A stretch of 64,000 nucleotides of DNA from Guillardia theta CCMP2712 (taxonomy: Eukaryota > Protista > Cryptophyta). The position numbers were made by a program, and so were the translations under genes. The stretch covers positions 36,866-100,865 of the forward strand of contig NW_005434557.1 of assembly GCF_000315625.1 (NCBI RefSeq), written 5' to 3'. The notes beneath the pieces were generated by a model. That model did not search any database and had not been told where the DNA came from. It saw only the letters and a list, made by a program, of their open reading frames with translations. Shown piece by piece: positions 2,854 through 53,551 of the stretch (position 1 is the stretch's first letter; the number at the start of each line of letters is the position of its first letter).

Positions 2854-4064
2854 TTAGTCGCTCGACTTCTTCTCTTCTCCCGACGTGTTCTCATCATGCT
2901 CTCCCTTCTCGGCATGCTTCTCATCTTCGTTCTTGTGATGCTTCCCGTGGTGACCGTGACCGTGACCGTGACCATGCCCGTGCCCATGACCGTGAGGCTT
3001 CCCGTTGTGGCTGTGGACACAGTCAGAGCAGTCCACCTCCCACTCACACCAGCGCTGCTTCACCTGATAGCCGCCAGCCAGGGCTTGGTGCTGCGGTGAG
3101 TCTTGTCCTTCATCGAAGACGCATGATCCTTGTACTCAATCGTCGTTCCATCCAGGTGGGTCATGATCGACTTCAACTTCTCCCTGCTCACTAGTCAAGG
3201 CTCGTTCAAGCACAAGTCAATTTTAGAAGGGGTTGAAGCATGCTCAGGCTCATTAAATCAGATATTTTTGCTGCCACTTATCAAGTCCAGAAGGAAACGT
3301 CTCATCATTGCAATAGCAAGCGACTGAAGAAACATGCTTTCATGCTCACCCGAGCTCATCCTTCACGGATTCGTTGTCCTCATTGTCTTTGTTCCAGATT
3401 TGAATAATATCCTCCTTTGGTTTCACACTGACCATGACGCCAACAAGCTGGGAGAAACAACAGGTGAGCTGCACCCGAGACAACACCGTCATCTACTCAC
3501 ATCTGGCTCCGCAAAAGCTTCGCCTACACACGCCAACACCAACTCCTCCCAGCATTTGGAGAGGTTTGGGCTCGGGTGGTGGTTCTGCTTCTTAAATCTA
3601 ATAATCCAAGCTCCCCCATGCGGGAAAGTTTCCCACATTGGCATGTAGCCTTCCCGAAACACTGTTCCACAGTCAAAACACGTCATGCCACAGCGAAGCG
3701 CGTGCGAACCATGATAAGTAGTCGATTGATGCATGTCATATGGACGGCTCAACTGAGAGTACAAGTCCCAAAACTCTTCGATAGTGCGAAAGCTCCCCAG
3801 ATTTTTCAGATGGTCAAAATACGTAGATGCTTTCATGACGGCGTGAGATTTGTTCTCAATCTTCTTGTCAAACCAAAATGTCCATCCTGTCTCTAAAGGA
3901 TGGCCAGTGGTATCATTCGATGCTGCCTCCTTAGGTACCTGAAGATAAGGGTGGTTCAAAACCAGCAAGCTAGGGTAACTGAGTCGTATGCACCTCAGCA
4001 TTTTGTTCGGCCGAGGTAGCTGCTGCGGTATCTGACATTTTCTCCACTTCCACTTAATCTGCAA
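2854..4064 (-). CDS. EIF4E: eIF4E-family cap-binding protein with His-rich C-terminal tail (multi-exon, start uncertain)
   Basis: HPLETGWTFWFD, LGSFRTIEEFWDLY, FREGYMPMWE..GGAW, WEELVLACVGE, GVMVSVKPKEDIIQIWNKD, IEYKDH; last exon HGHGHGHGHGHHGKHH. Confidence 0.9.
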
Positions 4065-42116: not shown

Positions 42117-44476
42117 ATGCTCGGGTTTGTCACAGAGGCTTTCAAAGAAGCTTCGAATCTGCAGAAACGAATCGAGCAGAGAAGAAGCGAACTCGACAAA
42201 CACAAGTCTCAGCTCCTCCTGAGGTCGCTCAAGGAGCGGGGAATCAAGATTGAAAAAGAGACTTCTTCTGCCATCAAGCCAAGCAACATCGTCAAGCTCA
42301 ACGTGGGAGGAACGAAGATAGACGTAAAGAGAAGCACCATCACTCGCTTCTCCTCCAAACTCAAGTGGATGCTGAGGTGAACTCGTCCTCTCCTCTCCTC
42401 CAGCTGAGCCTCTACTAGCGGTCGCTGGGATCACATCTACAAGCTCGACAATGAAGGACGGATTTTCCTCGACTATGATGCTGGCTGGTTCGACCCTATC
42501 ATCAACCACCTGGTGTACCGATCCTCCTCCTCTACCCCATCATCCTCCTCCTCACCACCACCACTCCCCTTCCTCCCCCTCCCCATCCTCCTCCTCCTCA
42601 TCATCATCATCAGCAGCAGCACCACCACCACCACCATCTGCATCCTTTCCTCCTGCCTTCCTGTTACTCGCGCTCACATAATGCGTAGCGGGAGCTCACA
42701 ATGCAGGACCCGACCATCCCCATACGGCAGCCGAAAGCCAGTCATGGCGATCAGTTCGGATTCCGGCAGCTGCAGAAGCATCTTGGCTTGGAGAAGCTGT
42801 TCTCGAGTGAAGGCGAGGTGGAGGCGGGAGTGATGAAGCCTTGGATGCAGGCCGTCTTGGCAGGAACCATCGTGACGACATTGGAAGCAGACGGCAGAGA
42901 CTGTGAGTTCCGCCTCCTCCATCGTGGAAGCCGCGATGGGTTCGAATGCTCGAAGGTGCAGAGCAAGAGCGCAGGTGTGGTCAACAGCATCACCATCGTA
43001 CGTGACACGGAAGGGAACGTGTTTGGGGCCTTTGTGGACGTGGGGAGAAGCTTTCACGAGCAATACATTGAGTCCAGCAAGGCGTTTCTGTTCCACTTGT
43101 CCAGCAGAGGCTCACAAGACCCGAAGCTCTACAAGGTCTATCCCGTCAAGGCCGACCAGAAGCACACAGCGGTGCGAGGAGTCCGAGCTTGCTGTGCCGT
43201 GCTGGGAGCTGGGCCGGATCTGAGCATATCGAACGCATGCAACGCCAACAACGAGAGCTCTTGCCACCTGGGCACAACGTACGAGAACTATGGGAGCCCT
43301 CACGCTCTCACCAACGGTCGCGTCAACTTCCAGGTGGCTGAGCTGGAAGTCTGGCAAGTCAAGCTGGAGCTGGTCGGAGCCGAGGGTGTCAAAGACGCGA
43401 ACCGCCGAGTGCCGACCAAGTCCGCCTCGCTCTTATCGGAGCTGACGCGAAGGGTCAAGGACATCGACAGCTGCGTGCAGGAGCTGCTGGGGGAGGGGGT
43501 GAGACTGCAGCAGGAGGAGGAGAACTTGATCGAGGACGGGAGAGATCTCGACGACGAGATGGAGTACATGGAGAAGATGGAAGAGAAGCACAAGGCACAG
43601 GAGATCATCTTCTTCAACGTCGGCGGGAGGAAGCATTACACCACCAAACAGACTCTGTCGCTCATCAAGGGTTCCAAGCTCTACATGCAGTACGCGAGTG
43701 GTCAAGTGCAGGTGCCAGAGACTGACTTGGATGACGACGGAGACATCTTCCTTGACATCAACCCCTACTGCTTCGGCAAGATCCTTTCCCAGCTGCGGCT
43801 TAGACGCCTGTACGAGGACCTGCCGGACAAGGAGCAGGACGAGATCAACATCGGCATCGTCGTGGACCCCCAGTACTTGGAGTCGTTCGATCGCATGTTG
43901 AACTTCTACCAGGTCGAGCAGTCCGACTTGGCCTGCTTCCGTTCCTCCATCTTGCCAGCTCGAGAGCGAGTAACCAGATTGCTCCAGCTGCTCCGACCCC
44001 ACATGCAGGAGATCCCTTGCCGATACGCCTCCCTCCTCTTCCGCGGCAGCCGCGATGGTTTCACGAGGGGCCAGCTGCAGACCAAGTGGAACAATACGAG
44101 CAACAAGCTGCTGTTGGTCAAGGACTCCAACAACAACATCTTCGGGGGCTTCGTCGACTCGAAGAACAACAACGCTTCCTCTAGCAGAGCCTTCCTCTTC
44201 AGCCTCGAGCTCACTGCTGACATCCATCAAGACTCTCTCACTGTCTGCAGGCTGATCGGAGCCATTCCCGACGGCTGCGCCTTCAACTTTAACGTGGGCG
44301 GCTGCTTCGCCTTCGGTAGTAGGCCTGACCTGTTCCTGTCCGAGAACTGCAACCAGAACCAGCAGAGCTCCTGCAACCTCGGGCAGACGTTCAACGCTCA
44401 CAACAACCCTCACCTCCTCACCAGTGGCTCTCTCAACTTCACCGTGATGGAGATGGAAGCCTGGGGCCTTCACTAG
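42117..44476 (+). CDS. BTB/POZ (KCTD/T1-type) - TLDc - coiled coil - BTB - TLDc protein
   Basis: BTB1 IVKLNVGG..RSTI..SGRW..GRIFLD; TLDc1 LLHRGSRDGF..RDTEGNVFGAF..AFLF..ELEVW; BTB2 FNVGGRKHYTTKQTL..GDIFLDINP; TLDc2 LLFRGSRDGF..KDSNNNIFGGF..EMEAW. Introns near 42376-42418 and 42513-42706. Confidence 0.92.
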
Positions 44477-44961
44477 GAATGAGGCGGAAACAGCCCTAAG
44501 GTATTTGAGCTCTACTGGCGTCAGCCCTGCTCTTGTCTGATCCTTGAATGTGACGTCAGTCAGAGAGAGGGTCATGAACGTTGTCGTTGATAGATCATTC
44601 TGAATGCTCCTCTTGCTTGAATTTGATCCTCACAACCATGATCTCATGCCCCCTCCCTCCCCGAGCCATTTTGTCTCTTCCCCTTGTTTGAATTCTCCGC
44701 ATTTGTAGTCATTCTTGACTCTATCAGCATGTCTTCAGCTATCGCTACTCTCTCCGACGTGAGCAAAACGACTCGACCCGGAAGGATGATGTCTCCTAGT
44801 CCGTCATCATCAAGTGAAATCGAGAGAGAGCCAAGGGAATGTCCCGCCCCCCTGACTCGAGTCTGTCTTACACGCCCTCCTTCTACTCTCACAAACAGCT
44901 TCCGGTAGGTCTTGTTGTACATACACGAGCCCTACCGCTACTTGTGCATGCTCGCCTCCTC

Positions 44962-47900
44962 CTACTGGCATAGAGTGTTGCGGAAGTTCACGTACTCCCT
45001 GTGCAGATGCTTCTTGATCCCATGCATCTCCTCCAGCAGCACCTGCCACCGCCTCCATCATCCTCCTTATCCTCTCCCGCCCCCCTCANNNNNNNNNNNN
45101 NNNNNNNNNNNNNNNNNNNNNNNNNNNNNNNNNNNNNNNNNNNNNNNNNNNNNNNNNNNNNNNNNNNNNNNNNNNNNNNNNNNNNNNNNNNNNNNNNNNN
45201 NNNNNNNNNNNNNNNNNNNNNNNNNNNNNNNNNNNNNNNNNNNNNNNNNNNNNNNNNNNNNNNNNNNNNNNNNNNNNNNNNNNNNNNNNNNNNNNNNNNN
45301 NNNNNNNNNNNNNNNNNNNNNNNNNNNNNNNNNNNNNNNNNNNNNNNNNNNNNNNNNNNNNNNNNNNNNNNNNNNNNNNNNNNNNNNNNNNNNNNNNNNN
45401 NNNCCTGCCCTCCTCTCAGCTCTTCCTGCCCGGTCTCTCGCCTCCCTTCCCTCCTACCTCCACGCACACGCACAGGTCCCGGTAGCCCCCGCTCAAGCTC
45501 GTGCCGCCAGACGGGTCGTACCTGCCCCACAGGCTCAGCCGCATCCCTTGGCTCGACCCGCTTGACTCCTCTACATCCCCTCAGCTCACTCCTCGCCTCG
45601 TCTCCCTCCCCCTCGCTCCCCGCTTCCCGCTCCCCGCTCCTGCTCCTCGCTCCTCGCTCGTCTTCTTCTGGTGCACGTACCGGTTCTTGATGTTGGTGAT
45701 GCTCATGTAGATCTCCCCGCCTTCCTCTCCCCCGCCCGTCTGTCGAAGGCTCGTCACTTCCTCCTCCTCGCCGTCTCGGTTCTCTCTGCCCTCCTTACCT
45801 CCACGTCCTCCGACATCACCCTCCCTCCTCCAGGCTGGTCCCACGCGCTCACCCCGTGCCCCACCACCGACTGACCCCGCAAGAAGCTCAACCACGACAG
45901 CACGTCGTCGATCGACGACACCACGACAGTACATCGCACCAGGTCGGTCAGGCACGAGGGGTCGCGCCTGTACGACCTCACCGTCTTCTGCATCGCTCGC
46001 GCGCAAGACTTGACGTTACCATGCTCCACCCGCCCCACCCGGTTCCACCCGGACACCCACAGCTGGAAGGCGGCGCTGACCTCCTGCGCCTGGAGGAAGA
46101 GCTGCTCGAAGTCTCGGCTCGCCTGCCGGATCTTCCCGTTCCTCCTCGAGTATCGCCGGCCCCGCAGGCCGAGCGTCACCCACAAGTACCGACGCCACGT
46201 CCGGGTGTCATCGCCGATCACCTCCTCCAGCTCTTGAGCGATCGCCCGGACTCGCGCGCTGATCTCCTGCACTACGTGCGAGCTCTCCTCGACGACGCTG
46301 GTCCAAGTGTCCTCGAAGCCTCGCATGGCTGCCTTGAGGTCCCTGAAGGTCCTGGCGTACGCCCGGTGATACTCCACCACGATCGCCAGCTCCACCAGCC
46401 AGCAACCTACCCCGAGGCACAAGAAGCCGAAGCTTTCAAGGTCTGTTGATATGATCCCAACAAACAGGCAGAATGCACCCTGGACAAGAAAGGCAGCCAT
46501 CCAGAAGTAGTGCTGCACGAAATGCGCCAGGTACATCATGATCATAAGCAATGAAGAAGAAATAATCTTTTGACTCGAGTTGCAGAATGGTCCTATCCCC
46601 GTCCCCTGAGTCGAGCACTGCACAAAGTCGGCTACCATGCAGGCCACGTTGGCCGTCAGCACCAGATGCCCCGTTGACAGCAGCAGCCACTTGGCTCGTA
46701 ACGGTGTGCTCAGCAGCCCCAGCAGCACCCCGCTCAAGAACAACAAGCTCCACGCAAAGCTGATGATCGGATCTGCCATGACCGATATCCTCACAGTCTT
46801 GGGCTTGACGGGCGTGCCCGAGCTCTTGTCCGGCAGCCAGACCTGGTCGGACATGATCGGGCCCAGCTGCTTGATCCCGAACACAAGGTACACCAGGCTG
46901 AGGAAGACGATGCAGCTTCTCGCCGGCAGCTTCACCAGGGCCGTCTCGAGGGAGTTGGTGGTGCGGAGGGCGAGGACCCCGTTGACGTCAGCGTCTCGGT
47001 ACTGCCTGAGCCTGTCGTTGAGAGGGAGGAAGCGCTCGTCCTTCTTGTAGTCCTCCACCAGCTTCTCGAGCGTCCGGATCGAGCTCTCGTCTGAAGCATT
47101 GTATGCTGTGATGTCAAGGCAAGATTCCACTATCTGAATGCAACTTTGAGCCTGCGACAGTGCTCTCGTGAACAGAGGAAGTTTGTCCAGGGTCTCGATG
47201 CCCCGCAGCGCGAAGTACTCGTTGAACTTGTCATACATCCCCGTCTCCTGCAGTACCTGCAGCACCTCGATCCCCCGAGGGTTGTGTTTCGAGAACTCCC
47301 ACAGCTTTCGGTCGATGTGCTCCTTCACCACCCTCACCAGACAGTGTGCTATCAGCTCCCCCGCCTCCCTCGCGCTTCTCTCGACATCTCCGGTTGAGTC
47401 TACGTACATGCCAGCCACTCCCTTGCTCCCCTTCCCTCTCCTTGTCTCCTCCCCCAGCCCGACCTCTGCCCTCCTCCCCGCAGGCAGCAGCATCGCCACC
47501 GCCTCCTGCACCGAGACTCCCAGCAGGTACTCGAGTATCGCCTCTCTGTCCCTCCGGACGCCTCCTGCTTGTATCAGCTCGCTCGCCCGCGCGCAGCTGC
47601 GTACCGACGGCTTCCTGCTGAGGCTCCCGCACGCGCTGGAGAGGGAGGTGCGTCCCTCGGACTCGTCCCGCAGGATGGGTAGCACGGCCTTGAGTCTCCC
47701 GGCGTCCTTGTTGAGCAGGTAGAGCGCTGCCAGCGCGTGCACGAGGAAGTCACTCTCACGGTCGTGCGCCTCGTCGATCGCTGCGAGCTCCTCCAGCACG
47801 CTGTGTTCCTGACCCCAGGTGATGACGGGCACGAAGACGGAGCAGTTGCACAGGTATCTGGCTCTAGTCACCCTTGTCTCGAGGGCAGCCAGGTAGGGCA

Positions 47901-48153
47901 CGCAGTCCATGTCGAGGTAGGTCTTGCCGGGGTAGATCTTGTAGACGTCATTTGACCTTTTCGAGAGAGTCTCGTGCAGGACGCTGTGGAGGCGATCTTT
48001 CAGAAGGGCTGTCTCGTGATGGCGGCTGTCGAATCGCTGGTACTCAGGATGGAGCCTGTAGACAAAGATGTGCGTGTGATCGCTTTTAGTGTCATCTAGT
48101 GACCGGGCTCGTTGATTGTTCATTTCAAAGATCATGAAGGGTGTTGCTTTCAT
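44962..48153 (-). CDS. TIR-like / SAM-like / 6-TM / RelA-SpoT-like nucleotidyltransferase protein, copy A (open frame; one exon hidden in N gap)
   Basis: 799-aa first-exon ORF plus short 3' exons. Motifs: HIFVYR..YLDMDC..SVFVPVITW..AVLPIL; EVLQVLQETGMYDKFNEYFALRGIETLDKL; six hydrophobic helices; VKSCARAMQK, LTDLVRCTVV, IKNRY, GGYRD, MHGIKKHLHREYVNFRN. Confidence 0.8.
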
Positions 48154-48680
48154 TCACTTGTTGTTCAGCCCAGAAACCAGCTCAAGGAACGTTGTGGGCG
48201 GACACTACATGACTCTCAAACGCTCAGAGCTACTCACCATCGTGAAGAATGTTGGTGCATGACCTACTCATGTCGTATCAGACTGTTTCAAGCCGCATGC
48301 CCTTGCATCGCGCTATCGTCTGCTACCGATCTTCCAGTTACCTTTTTACTTTTGAGCCTACCCCTCCCCTACTCCATTACCCCCCCTTCTCATAGCAAAT
48401 GAACCCGTCCGAGCTCCCACGTCATCACGCCACAAATGTACCTTTATAACCTTATAGTGATTACCCGAATCGTTGCGGATTCGAGGCTCCTTCAAAAAAC
48501 AAAGCCTAGTTATACTGTTACTGGGCTGAGCGGGCCCGGGATGAGGGAGGTTACTGCGTGGCATGACCCGGCCGCCGCCTCGTTACCACTGAGTTTTCAA
48601 GTTTGATCCGATGATCCGAGTCACGCATGTCAGAGTCACCGTCACCGGGCTTTCTGACTCGGGCGCTGTGATCCGAAGTA

Positions 48681-48880
48681 GTCTTTGATGTCTTTGATAT
48701 TTTTGATATCTTTGCCATGTCTTCACAGAGTCAAGTTGATGTCTTTGATGTCTTACATTCACTCAGCGGATGTCTTTGATGTCCGATCTTTGACTCTGTG
48801 ATTCAACTTGGCAAGTTGATGTCCGAAGTTTGATGTCTTTCAGTCGGATGTCTTTGATATCTTTGATGTCTTTGAACTTA
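48681..48880. repeat. Degenerate 9-bp repeat (GATGTCTTT)n in the spacer of the inverted pair
   Basis: More than ten GAT(G/A)TCTTT-like units, interrupted by AAGTT/TCCGA words. Confidence 0.8.
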
Positions 48881-50009
48881 GTATCCGAAGTTTGCCAGTG
48901 ATGTTACGGAGTACGGGTTTTGATATCCGTTTGATGAGTCAGTACTTTGAGATGTCGGAGTCACCGTGCCACTGCGACTCGGCGGGCCTCCGGCAGAGCT
49001 CGGAGGCAGCCCGGCACCGGGCACCTGCTACCCTGAGGCTGCCATCTGGCACTGACATGAGTCTCACTGAGGCCGGGCCGATCTGACGGTCCGATCGGCA
49101 GTGAGCCGCTGCCGCAGTGCCACGGACAGTGTCAGGGTCAAGCCCGGCCTCCTCGACTCTCCTGATTGTCCTCGTACTGCTTTTTAACTTAACTTTGAGT
49201 AAAGCCACGGACTGACAGCACTAGCTGGATGTCTTGATGAGTCACGTGTAGTAGATGTTTTATATCTTCATCAGCGACCGTTCGGAGTTCAGAAGCCAAC
49301 CAAGGGAAAGAGTTTTAGATGGGGTTGGGGTGGGTTAAAACTTGATCAGGATGGGTGAAAATTCACTTAGACGATATGGTGGGAGGAGACAGGGGGGTGG
49401 GACAATTGAGTGTATTTTTAAAAATATCAAAAGACGTGTTTTGGAGTGAGAATTGATGTAGGTGCAACTCGCGAAGAGTGTGTAGGTATTTCCAGTCATT
49501 CAAGGGGGTAGTCTGGCAGAGGGGGGGTGCTCCTCCTCACAAGGCGGAAAAATGCTCAGTGCGGGGGAACGAAAGGAGGAAAAGAAAGAGAGAAGGAAGT
49601 GAAGGAGAGCGAAGAAAGAGACAGCAGAAGGAGAGAGAACAAACAATCATATCTGCAGTGACTGACAGGCAATGGATGGTTGGGAGCTATGCCGGAAGAT
49701 TGAAATGTTGAATCGAGCGATTCAATCGAAAGCAAACTTTGCCTATCGGCAACACGGGTGAAAGAGATTGAGCGTGTGAGCGAAAAAGTGCACGAGATTT
49801 AGGTTGAACTCGACTCAGAAACTATCATGCAATCCTAGCATCAATTTCGATGGACTGACGAAATGACGATTTGCTCAAGAGTGTATTTGAAAGGTTTTCA
49901 GAACTGATTGTGTAAAATTTGCAGATTCGCATATGCTGCCGGCTGATATGTATCGGGAACGTGGTGATTTTGTAAAATGGTATCCATGACACGTTAGAAA
50001 CAGCAGATC

Positions 50010-53000
50010 ATGCACAAGAGCAGGTCCGAGAGTAAGGAAAATGTACTTTTACCTACGCTTGCATCAAACCGAGCAAAGCGCCCAGTTTTGCACAAGCAAC
50101 AAACCGGGCTGCAGCCTGAAAGCAACTTACCACTGGCTGCTGCCAAGGACAACCTTCACTTCTTCGTCTACAGGCTCCATCCTCAGTCCGCCAGCAGCGG
50201 ACGTGAAGAAGAGACCGAGGCAAACACTGGTCATGACCAGCAGCTTTCAAGGCGCCTCCATCGCATCCTGCACGAGATCCTCTCCTCTGAAACTCAGAGC
50301 TTCTACAAGATCTACCCCGGCAAGACCTACCTCGACATGGACTGCGTGCCCTACCTGGCTGCCCTCGAGACAAGGGTGACCAGAGCCAGATACCTGTGCA
50401 ACTGCTCCGTCTTCGTGCCCGTCATCACCTGGGGTCAGGAACACAGCGTGCTGGAGGAGCTCGCAGCGATCGACGAGGCGCACGACCGTGAGAGTGACTT
50501 CCTCGTGCACGCGCTGGCAGCGCTCTACCTGCTCAACAAGGACGCCGGGAGACTCAAGGCCGTGCTACCCATCCTGCGGGACGAGTCCGAGGGACGCACC
50601 TCCCTCTCCAGCGCGTGCGGGAGCCTCAGCAGGAAGCCGTCGGTACGCAGCTGCGCGCGGGCGAGCGAGCTGATACAAGCAGGAGGCGTCCGGAGGGACA
50701 GAGAGGCGATACTCGAGTACCTGCTGGGAGTCTCGGTGCAGGAGGCGGTGGCGATGCTGCTGCCTGCGGGGAGGAGGGCAGAGGTCGGGCTGGGGGAGGA
50801 GACAAGGAGAGGGAAGGGGAGCAAGGGAGTGGCTGGCATGTACGTAGACTCAACCGGAGATGTCGAGAGAAGCGCGAGGGAGGCGGGGGAGCTGATAGCA
50901 CACTGTCTGGTGAGGGTGGTGAAGGAGCACATCGACCGAAAGCTGTGGGAGTTCTCGAAACACAACCCTCGGGGGATCGAGGTGCTGCAGGTACTGCAGG
51001 AGACGGGGATGTATGACAAGTTCAACGAGTACTTCGCGCTGCGGGGCATCGAGACCCTGGACAAACTTCCTCTGTTCACGAGAGCACTGTCGCAGGCTCA
51101 AAGTTGCATTCAGATAGTGGAATCTTGCCTTGACATCACAGCATACAATGCTTCAGACGAGAGCTCGATCCGGACGCTCGAGAAGCTGGTGGAGGACTAC
51201 AAGAAGGACGAGCGCTTCCTCCCTCTCAACGACAGGCTCAGGCAGTACCGAGACGCTGACGTCAACGGGGTCCTCGCCCTCCGCACCACCAACTCCCTCG
51301 AGACGGCCCTGGTGAAGCTGCCGGCGAGAAGCTGCATCGTCTTCCTCAGCCTGGTGTACCTTGTGTTCGGGATCAAGCAGCTGGGCCCGATCATGTCCGA
51401 CCAGGTCTGGCTGCCGGACAAGAGCTCGGGCACGCCCGTCAAGCCCAAGACTGTGAGGATATCGGTCATGGCAGATCCGATCATCAGCTTTGCGTGGAGC
51501 TTGTTGTTCTTGAGCGGGGTGCTGCTGGGGCTGCTGAGCACACCGTTACGAGCCAAGTGGCTGCTGCTGTCAACGGGGCATCTGGTGCTGACGGCCAACG
51601 TGGCCTGCATGGTAGCCGACTTTGTGCAGTGCTCGACTCAGGGGACGGGGATAGGAGCAGAGTGTAACGGTTTCTCGGATATAATCACTGTGAGCTTTCT
51701 GGCTATCATGATGTACCTGGCGCATTTCGTGCAGCACTACTTCTGGATGGCTGCCTTCCTCGCTCAAGGGGCTTACTGCTTCTACTCGGCTCTAGCTCTT
51801 GACAATCAGTTCAGGTACGTGATGGTCTGCCTCGGGGTAGGTTGCTGGCTGGTGGAGCTGGCGATCGCGGTGGAGTATCACCGGGCGTACGCCAGGACCT
51901 TCAGGGACCTCAAGGCAGCCATGCGAGGCTTCGAGGACACTTGGACCAGCGTCGTCGAGGAGAGCTCGCACGTAGTGCAGGAGATTAGCGCGCGAGTCGG
52001 GCGATCGCTCAAGAGCTGGAGGAGGTGATCGGCGATGACACCCGGACGTGGCGTCGGTACTTGTGGGTGACGCTCGGCCTGCGGGGCCGGCGATACTCGA
52101 GGAGGAACGGGAAGATCCGGCAGGCGAGCCGAGACTTCGAGCAGCTCTTCCTCCAGGCGCAGGAGGTCAGCGCCGCCTTCCAGCTGTGGGTGTCCGGGTG
52201 GAACCGGGTGGGGCGGGTGGAGCATGGTAACGTCAAGTCTTGCGCACGAGCGATGCAGAAGACGGTGAGGTCGTACAGGCGCGACCCCTCGTGCCTGACC
52301 GACCTGGTGCGATGTACTGTGGTGGTGTCGTCGATCGACGACGTGCTGTCGTGGTTGAGCTTCTTGCGGGGTCAGTCGGTGGTGGGGCACGGGGTGAGCG
52401 CGTGGGACCAGCCTGGAGGAGGGAGGGTGATGTCGGAGGACGTGGAGGTAAGGAGGGCAGAGAGAACCGAGACGGCGAGGAGGAGGAAGTGACGAGCCTT
52501 CGACAGACGGGCGGGGGAGAGGAAGGCGGGGAGATCTACATGAGCATCACCAACATCAAGAACCGGTACGTGCACCAGAAGAAGACGAGCGAGGAGCGAG
52601 GAGCAGGAGCGGGGAGCGGGGAGCGAGGAGCGAGGGGGAGGGAGACGAGGCGGGGAGCGAGCTGAGGGGATGTAGAGGAGTCAAGCGGGTCGAGCCAAGG
52701 GATGCGGCTGAGCCTGTGGGGCAGGTACGACCCGTCTGGCGGCACGAGCTTGAGCGGGGGCTACCGGGACCTGTGCGTGTGCGTGGAGGTAGGAGGGAAG
52801 GGAGGCGAGAGACCGGGCAGGAAGAGCTGAGAGGAGGGCAGGTGGGATGGACGATAGACGAGTCGAGCCAGTGCTGCACGTTCGTACCGGTGAAGGAGTG
52901 GGGGAGGACAGCAGGGCTGCGGAAGCACATCTGCGAGATACAGGTGAGGAGAGGAGAGGAGAGGAGAGGAGAGGAGAGGAGAGGAGAGGAGAGGAGAGGA

Positions 53001-53255
53001 GAGGAGAGGAGAGGAGTGGAGTGGAGTGGAGAGGAGTGGAGTGGAGTGGAGTGGAGAGGAGAGGAGTGGAGAGGAGTGGAGTGGAGAGGAGAGGAGAGGA
53101 GAGGAGAGGAGAGGAGAGGAGAGGAGGAGCAAAGAGGAGGGGGGAGAGGAGTAGGATGATGGAGGCGGTGGCAGGTGCTGCTGGAGGAGATGCATGGGAT
53201 CAAGAAGCATCTGCACAGGGAGTACGTGAACTTCCGCAACACTCTATGCCAGTAG
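50010..53255 (+). CDS. Copy B of the TIR-like/SAM-like/6-TM/RelA-SpoT-like gene, with a 1-bp deletion at ~51998 (truncated form, pseudogene or sequencing error)
   Basis: 672-aa ORF to 52028. GAGTCGGGCG versus GAGTCCGGGCG in copy A. Downstream exons 52507-52565 (ITNIKNR), ~52725-52788 (YDP..GGYRDLCVCVE), ~52841-52943 (..HICEIQ), ~53175-53255 (VLLEEMH..NTLCQ*). Confidence 0.8.
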
Positions 53256-53551
53256 GAGGAGGCGAGCATGCACAAGTAGCGGTAGGGCTCGTGTATGTAC
53301 AACAAGACCTACCGGAAGCTGTTTGTGAGAGTAGAAGGAGGGCGTGTAAGACAGACTCGAGTCAGGGGGGCGGGACATTCCCTTGGCTCTCTTTCAGTTT
53401 CACCCGGGTCCATCGCTTCTCCTCCTTGCTCAGGATGCTCAGGAACTTGTTGGGAGGGTCTTCATGCACGCGCACCCGCCTGCCCTCCACCTGAAGGAGT
53501 CGGTCAGCTCCTCTCGCGTCTCAGGCTGCTCGCACGGGGTGGTCGAAGGCG

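Follow-up and report, generated by a model that had tools for sequence, protein, structure and literature searches.

Two short divergent patches in otherwise near-identical inverted gene copies of Guillardia theta

Two gene copies, here called A and B, lie head to head in the window (the whole 64,000-nucleotide stretch of Guillardia theta CCMP2712 DNA that was analysed, scaffold C117, positions 36866-100865), in the arms of an inverted repeat, and within these near-identical arms two short, sharply bounded patches differ heavily. The locus raises the question of how old the patches are, how they stay different between copies that are otherwise almost the same, and whether they are, as a preliminary description of this DNA had proposed, the specificity-determining segments of a diversifying receptor.

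The inverted gene pair and its two patches

The two arms are separated by a spacer of ~2.4 kb and hold one long ORF each, at the following positions:

44814 to 47945, minus strand: inverted-repeat arm A (repeats I1-I5), with an N gap at ~45090-45400
50302 to 53403, plus strand: inverted-repeat arm B, the partner of arm A
45754 to 48153, minus strand: long first exon/ORF of copy A, 799 aa
50010 to 52492, plus strand: ORF of copy B, the same as that of A, split in the reference into ORFs 50010-52028 and 52025-52492

The NCBI model of copy A (GUITHDRAFT_117878) is 852 aa long, with two short 3' exons added further downstream. Arm B also carries a minisatellite at 52893-53192 (10-nt period, ~30 units, EERRG/SPLLS-type frames), and the matching place in arm A is taken up by its N gap. 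A neighbouring intronless ORF on the plus strand (42701-44476) encodes two TLDc stretches (TLDc E = 1e-34) and a BTB_2 domain. In the spacer, a stretch of ~55 nt (49150-49204) reaches a contig depth ~300 times the single-copy level in DNA runs (19455 vs. 66), has many different flanks and is abundant in RNA runs too; it is a short dispersed repeat.

The patches and the island between them are located as follows:

46543 to 46590, minus strand: patch 1 of copy A (A-type), residues 522-537 of the 799-aa ORF, PFCNSSQKIISSSLLM
46420 to 46489, minus strand: patch 2 of copy A, residues 557-578, VQGAFCLFVGIISTDLESFGFL
51657 to 51704, plus strand: patch 1 of copy B (B-type), B residues 550-565, AECNGFSDIITVSFLA, end of loop 3-4 and predicted outer half of TM4
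51705 to 51757, plus strand: inter-patch island, 100% identical in A and B, encoding the family-conserved IMMYLAHFVQHYFWMAAF, predicted inner ends of TM4 and TM5
51758 to 51827, plus strand: patch 2 of copy B, B residues 585-606, AQGAYCFYSALALDNQFRYVMV, predicted outer half of TM5, loop 5-6 and outer start of TM6

Pairwise alignment of B with A revealed 30 differences in the 48 nt of patch 1 and 43 in the 70 nt of patch 2, while the 53 nt of the island between them had none. Outside the patches, 0 of 1,117 nt differ in the 5' arm and 4 of 665 in the 3' arm, so that 73 of the 77 differences fall within 118 of ~1,953 aligned nt (binomial tail 1e-83). The preliminary description had placed the patch boundaries correctly to the base, and it was also right that the patches are free of indels and stops, that they encode the peptides it quoted and that the Cys pair of loop 3-4 (C513 and C524 of the 799-aa ORF) is retained. 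All family-conserved residues are kept in the patches (C, N; Q, G, A, C), and the predicted outer residues differ, with K529, D571, E573 and an NSS sequon in the A-type and E, D, D and R in the B-type. The island is only 77-82% identical in nucleotides to the paralogues C339, C53 and C32, indicating that the identity of A and B in this stretch stems from homogenisation and not from constraint alone. A small inversion or a compensated frameshift was rejected as the origin of the patches, as substitutions are spread across all codon positions (judged by eye).

We compared Logan contigs and reads from four runs with positions 46150-52100. Two of these are DNA runs from different studies (X1 and X2), and in both of them A patch 2 (46390-46519) and B patch 2 (51728-51857) assembled into 130-nt contigs of their own. 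The depth of A patch 2, B patch 2 and the shared arm was 66, 57.5 and 129 in X1 and 3, 2 and 6 in X2. Since each patch-2 version is present at ~1x relative to 2x for the shared arm in independent DNA runs, the two versions are not an assembly artefact. A contig from X1 (46490-47865) carries A patch 1 contiguous with the arm, and a 2.6-kb contig from another run, X6 (49545-52100), passes through both B patches with zero mismatches; X6 is probably an RNA run, because the spacer upstream of 49545 is uncovered. B patch 1 is absent from the DNA contigs, which is the expected outcome of popping a 48-nt bubble. Further, the MMETSP transcript P0132 contains both B-type patches together with the B-specific Ala of LAIAVEY, in frame. 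A chimeric consensus, which the preliminary description had allowed for, is contradicted by the DNA runs and the RNA run, and also by the MMETSP transcript with its B-type patches.

The arms show a single indel between A and B: in the reference, copy B lacks one base after 51997 and thereby loses its frame. In the X6 contig, the B-specific T at 51986 is accompanied by one additional C behind 51997, and the MMETSP transcript that carries the B patches reads in frame across this site. The missing C is an error of the reference assembly and the frameshift is false; as the transcripts are in frame, copy B is both intact and transcribed. In the runs examined, no transcript contig specific to A turned up.

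Protein family and predicted placement of the patches

Copies A and B belong to a family of uncharacterised membrane enzymes with a TIR-like domain, six transmembrane (TM) helices and a RelA/SpoT (Tas1)-like domain, listed also as TIR-like/SAM-like/6-TM/RelA-SpoT-like, with GUITHDRAFT_117878, _122485, _111645 and _108018 and Hanusia phi A0A7S0EMU0 as members. Alignment of A and B with the family proteins is full-length, at 55-66% identity. There are ~15 full-length paralogues in the genome (87 Mb, 669 contigs), and full-length relatives were found here only in the cryptophytes Guillardia and Hanusia; an exhaustive HMMER search retrieved 125 proteins, most of which share the C-terminal domain only. 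Searching Pfam with a single sequence gave no match. With the family profile, the C-terminal domain was matched to the (p)ppApp synthetase Tas1 (6ox6_A; E = 1.1e-6, ~43 profile positions), and by this match the domain is predicted to adopt a RelA/SpoT-homologue (RSH) nucleotide pyrophosphokinase-like fold. For the N-terminal part, Foldseek gave a weak match to the plant L6 TIR domain 3ozi (probability 0.92, TM-score by target 0.53, E = 0.32). Fold searches with the TM domain and with the whole model (PDB Foldseek, VIA wide, ESM Atlas) returned generic helical bundles only (Z <= 9.6, TM-score < 0.5), and a literature search gave no paper naming these genes or PRJEB17505. The N-termini of A and B show a mixed resemblance to different paralogue clades.

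The AF2 model has a pLDDT of 84.9 for the whole protein and 89.1 for the TM domain alone, and places the helices at residues 409-434 (TM1), 456-481 (TM2), 484-515 (TM3), 526-545 (TM4), 547-568 (TM5) and 572-623 (TM6). An even number of helices puts both soluble domains on one side, and both termini are predicted soluble domains of nucleotide-enzyme type. Lysines and arginines cluster on the side of the soluble domains (RAK in loop 2-3; HRAYARTFRDLK after TM6), and loop 1-2 contains N-x-S/T sequons in several paralogues. The two cysteines of loop 3-4 are either both present or both absent in 26 of 26 aligned family members, a co-variation that would fit a disulfide in a non-cytosolic compartment. 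In the model, patch 1 (522-537) covers the last four residues of loop 3-4 and the first 12 of TM4, and patch 2 (557-578) runs from the last 12 residues of TM5 through the 3-residue loop 5-6 into the first 7 residues of TM6. Taken with the positive-inside rule and the Cys co-variation, the model places the patches at the predicted non-cytosolic ends of TM4, TM5 and TM6. About 30 of the 38 patch residues are helix, mostly membrane-embedded, ~7 of 38 lie in loops, and the exposed QC..GTGIG..C loop is conserved. The earlier placement of the patches was correct, in line with the model, the side of the K/R residues and the Cys pair. Most of their residues, however, sit in membrane-embedded helix, and it is the exposed GTGIG/Cys loop that is conserved.

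Concerted evolution and the age of the two types

A close relative is represented by two metagenome contigs from two samples (L027 and L028), with ~97.6% nucleotide identity in the arms, for which a routing error is possible. Synteny pairs L027 with A (TLDc-gene flank, A-like 5' end) and L028 with B (B-like 5' end, B downstream flank), indicating that the duplication is older than the split from the relative. A and B each differ from the relative copies at 27 of 1,117 nt (2.4%). Within one genome, the two arms match each other completely in G. theta and at 99.5% in the relative. Since the duplication predates the split and yet the copies within a genome are more alike than the orthologues, the pair has undergone concerted evolution. 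Both syntenic copies of the relative carry B-type patches, and judged from these sequences the two patches appear to behave as one unit and to travel together. The 3' end of the TLDc ORF is kept beside the A-syntenic copy of the relative. As a separate observation, both relative copies lack two in-frame segments (12 and 14 codons) that correspond to A residues 108-119 and 133-147 (sites in the relative: L027 ~529-569, L028 ~277-280). In the G. theta model, the absent segments correspond to one strand and one helix of the TIR-like domain, and a G. theta RNA contig shows no splicing at these residues.

Exchange also reaches a third paralogue, in a tract located as follows:

45928 to 46152, minus strand: ectopic conversion tract of 224 nt, A residues 668-742, 100% identical to C339 over a background of 68%

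The identity of A/B with C339 in this tract is significant by permutation (p < 0.0005); C339 lies on another scaffold (L003 ~3450-3760), where the tract stands just before an assembly N gap, and P0005 shares the peptide of the tract. Transcript P0132 switches from B to C339 sequence inside the tract, and this join is probably a chimeric assembly. The tract shows that the family exchanges segments by conversion. Two other pairs were available for comparison. C4a/C4b, likewise head-to-head and inverted (C4:1071618-1079280), differs at 52 nt over 833 codons, with 35 of these differences in the TM domain, and the tandem near-identical pair C37a/C37b on scaffold C37 behaves similarly; dS in the TM domain is 0.12 and 0.15 in these pairs compared to 0.003-0.04 elsewhere. 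Among the pairs found, A/B alone combines saturated patches with a TM domain that is otherwise identical. What looked like a third divergent patch, in C37a/C37b (residues 220-259, 'omega 50'), turned out to be an assembly N gap.

Nearly all codons of conserved residues in the patches differ synonymously between A and B (Ser TCA vs. AGC; also Cys, Ile, Leu, Gln, Gly and Ala). Synonymous differences amount to 9.3 of 10 and 14.6 of 15 sites in the two patches when compared to 1 of 240 in the N-terminal domain, so that the patch dS is saturated and not computable, and the nucleotide identity of 38% is like that of the most distant family members. This saturation indicates that the patches are ancient and not the product of recent point mutations. 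In a tree of the 38 patch residues, the A-type forms one group with the paralogue C339 and with P0003, the orthologue of C339 in Hanusia (support 95/95; AU test vs. an A+B grouping, p = 0.044), and in the core tree A, B and the relative are joined at 100. A patch 2 shares 12 of its 22 aa with Hanusia P0003 and 4 with its B counterpart. For B patch 1, the nearest sequences are C53 and Hanusia P0007 (8-9 of 16 aa; 62% nt identity with C53).

The reading that we favour, and hold to be reasonably probable, is that the patches are a retained ancient two-type state in gene-converted old head-to-head duplicates. Repeated gene conversion between the inverted arms would keep the cores of A and B identical, and the patches would be islands still carrying two anciently diverged versions of one unit, made up of the non-cytosolic ends of TM4-TM6 and their short turns. 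The A-type would be the version native to the group of A/B and C339, and the B-type a second old version, with its patch 1 nearest to the C53/Hanusia P0007 group. The unit could apparently be overwritten whole by conversion, as in the relative with the B-type in both copies. The persistence of the islands may have two reasons: heterology this strong would stop conversion tracts or lead to their rejection, and helix ends converted halfway could pack poorly or alter the function. With two versions, the TM module would expose different surfaces at its outer mouth, for which a ligand or partner is purely hypothetical. Work on the GOT1 paralogues of Tigriopus (PMC3728101) states the general idea that divergence islands persist under conversion.

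Several observations weigh against retention. A converted island of 53 nt between unconverted patches requires a very short or discontinuous conversion tract. Three soluble-domain segments that are equally hypervariable in the family (~227-246, 323-342 and 617-636) are identical in A and B, so heterology alone is insufficient to explain which segments stayed different, and the relative shows that two types are not obligatory. These points also bear on the earlier suggestion that the patches are segments that resist conversion or are exchanged: the 224-nt tract shared with C339 and the movement of the patches as a unit are in keeping with it, but the homogenised hypervariable segments are not.

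Instead of being retained, the difference may have been imported recently, both copies having once been B-type and A having received both segments ectopically, after the split, from a paralogue of C339 type, since lost or else hidden in an assembly gap. This we regard as unlikely. The B-type patches in both copies of the relative, the clustering of the A-type with C339 and P0003, the directly visible ectopic exchange between A/B and C339 and the many assembly gaps are all in its favour. However, a whole-genome DNA search (87 Mb, E <= 10) found no further copy or donor of either patch, each matching its own locus only and the conserved island alone matching paralogues, and the A patches reach at best 47-56% nucleotide identity to any paralogue. 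The same search speaks against cassette swapping, which had been put forward as one way for such patches to arise, since the assembly contains no donor cassettes. A C339-like donor also differs in the island (77% identity), so that import would have required either two separate tracts (48 and 70 nt) or a discontinuous one. A scan of JGI metagenomes with the TM segment found no relative, and a word search with the 141-aa TM4-TM6 piece gave no match, leaving the A-type known only from CCMP2712.

Base composition likewise sets the A-type apart from such a donor, its GC3 being low, unlike that of the C339 equivalents of the two patches (1.00 and 0.86). GC3 is 0.44-0.64 in the patches (0.50 in B patch 1) vs. 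0.83 in the arms, and the unconverted 5' ends have 0.60. We had considered this dip as proof of a long escape from GC-biased conversion, but that argument is weakened by residues 335-354, which are identical in A and B and have an equally low GC3 of 0.35. Low GC3 in the patches may mark weakly constrained codons only.

Variability, selection and comparison with known systems

When B was compared to its orthologue, 12 of 118 nt differed in the patches and 44 of 1,835 in the arms (4-fold; p = 8e-5). Synonymous changes numbered 6/27 in the patches and 22/319 in the arms (dS raised ~3-fold), and nonsynonymous changes 6/93 and 9/965 (~7-fold; p = 0.001). Omega is 0.09 and 0.42 in the patches and 0.14 in the arm. 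Among close paralogues, the patches have a mean identity of 0.29 and 0.36 vs. 0.56 overall, within the lowest 4% and 7% of windows. In the near-identical pairs C4a/C4b and C37a/C37b, differences are concentrated in the TM domain, but not at the patch positions, and they are biased to the outer side in C37a/C37b and to the inner side in C4a/C4b. The orthologue pairs C339/P0003 and C53/P0007 show no bias to either side. The expectation that variability and dN/dS would peak at the patches was borne out to a limited extent: among close paralogues no windows of the TM domain are less conserved than the patches, but the three hypervariable soluble-domain windows equal them and other pairs differ elsewhere. 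Omega stays below 1 in both patches and dS is raised too, which gives no sign of diversifying selection.

These data bear on the proposal that the patches determine the ligand or partner specificity of a diversifying receptor and are kept different by positive or balancing selection or swapped as cassettes, which we consider rather improbable. Such a role would fit their predicted non-cytosolic position, the lowest conservation in the TM domain, the ~7-fold amino-acid substitution rate in the orthologue comparison, the joint travel of the two patches and an immune-like context in which a TIR-like N-terminal domain is combined with a Tas1-like enzyme domain. It fits poorly with the omega values and the 3-fold rise in dS, with only ~7 of 38 residues in loops next to a conserved exposed loop motif, and with the two orthologue pairs that show no outer-side excess and C4a/C4b, which differs more on the inner side. 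There is also no cassette archive, one lineage has a single type, and the TM fold matches no known receptor. The diversifying receptor of the preliminary description thus finds no support in the rate tests, with omega below 1 and no consistent outer-face excess across the family pairs.

A more far-reaching version, that a few ancient, co-adapted types of TM4-TM6 outer ends are shuffled as units among paralogues by conversion and make up a recognition repertoire, seems quite improbable to us; if true, it would be a membrane-embedded counterpart of immune-receptor diversification in a TIR-containing cryptophyte enzyme family. That the reference is merely a chimeric consensus or a collapsed repeat is extremely improbable: it does have a real error 170 nt downstream (the missing C) and N gaps in the arms, but two independent DNA runs and one RNA run contain both versions at the expected depths, and the B-type recurs in the MMETSP transcript and in two metagenome contigs.

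The verified map of A/B differences, in an unstudied algal protein of TIR/6-TM/alarmone-synthetase-like type, is a natural domain-swap design for tests of what the TM module may sense. In addition, the locus provides evidence that concerted evolution and ectopic conversion are active in the nuclear genome of Guillardia, and the reference frameshift in copy B is corrected.

Diversification by cassettes from silent donors is familiar from trypanosome VSG, Neisseria pilE/pilS and chicken Ig pseudogenes. As in those systems, short segments of A/B are replaced as units within an otherwise constant gene; unlike them, A/B has no donor archive, no second genomic copy of either patch and only two known versions. 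Divergence islands between converted duplicates are known from human RHD/RHCE and from the red and green opsin genes, and the GOT1 paralogues of Tigriopus are a further case. A/B resembles these in that the copies are closer within a species than orthologues are between species and that short, sharp stretches keep the old divergence, with tracts also common to a third paralogue, and it departs from them in that its islands lie in the TM helix ends of an uncharacterised protein and that a sister lineage has erased them. Viewed against both kinds of system, the A/B mosaic looks like a familiar evolutionary pattern, that of old divergence surviving between duplicates that overwrite each other.
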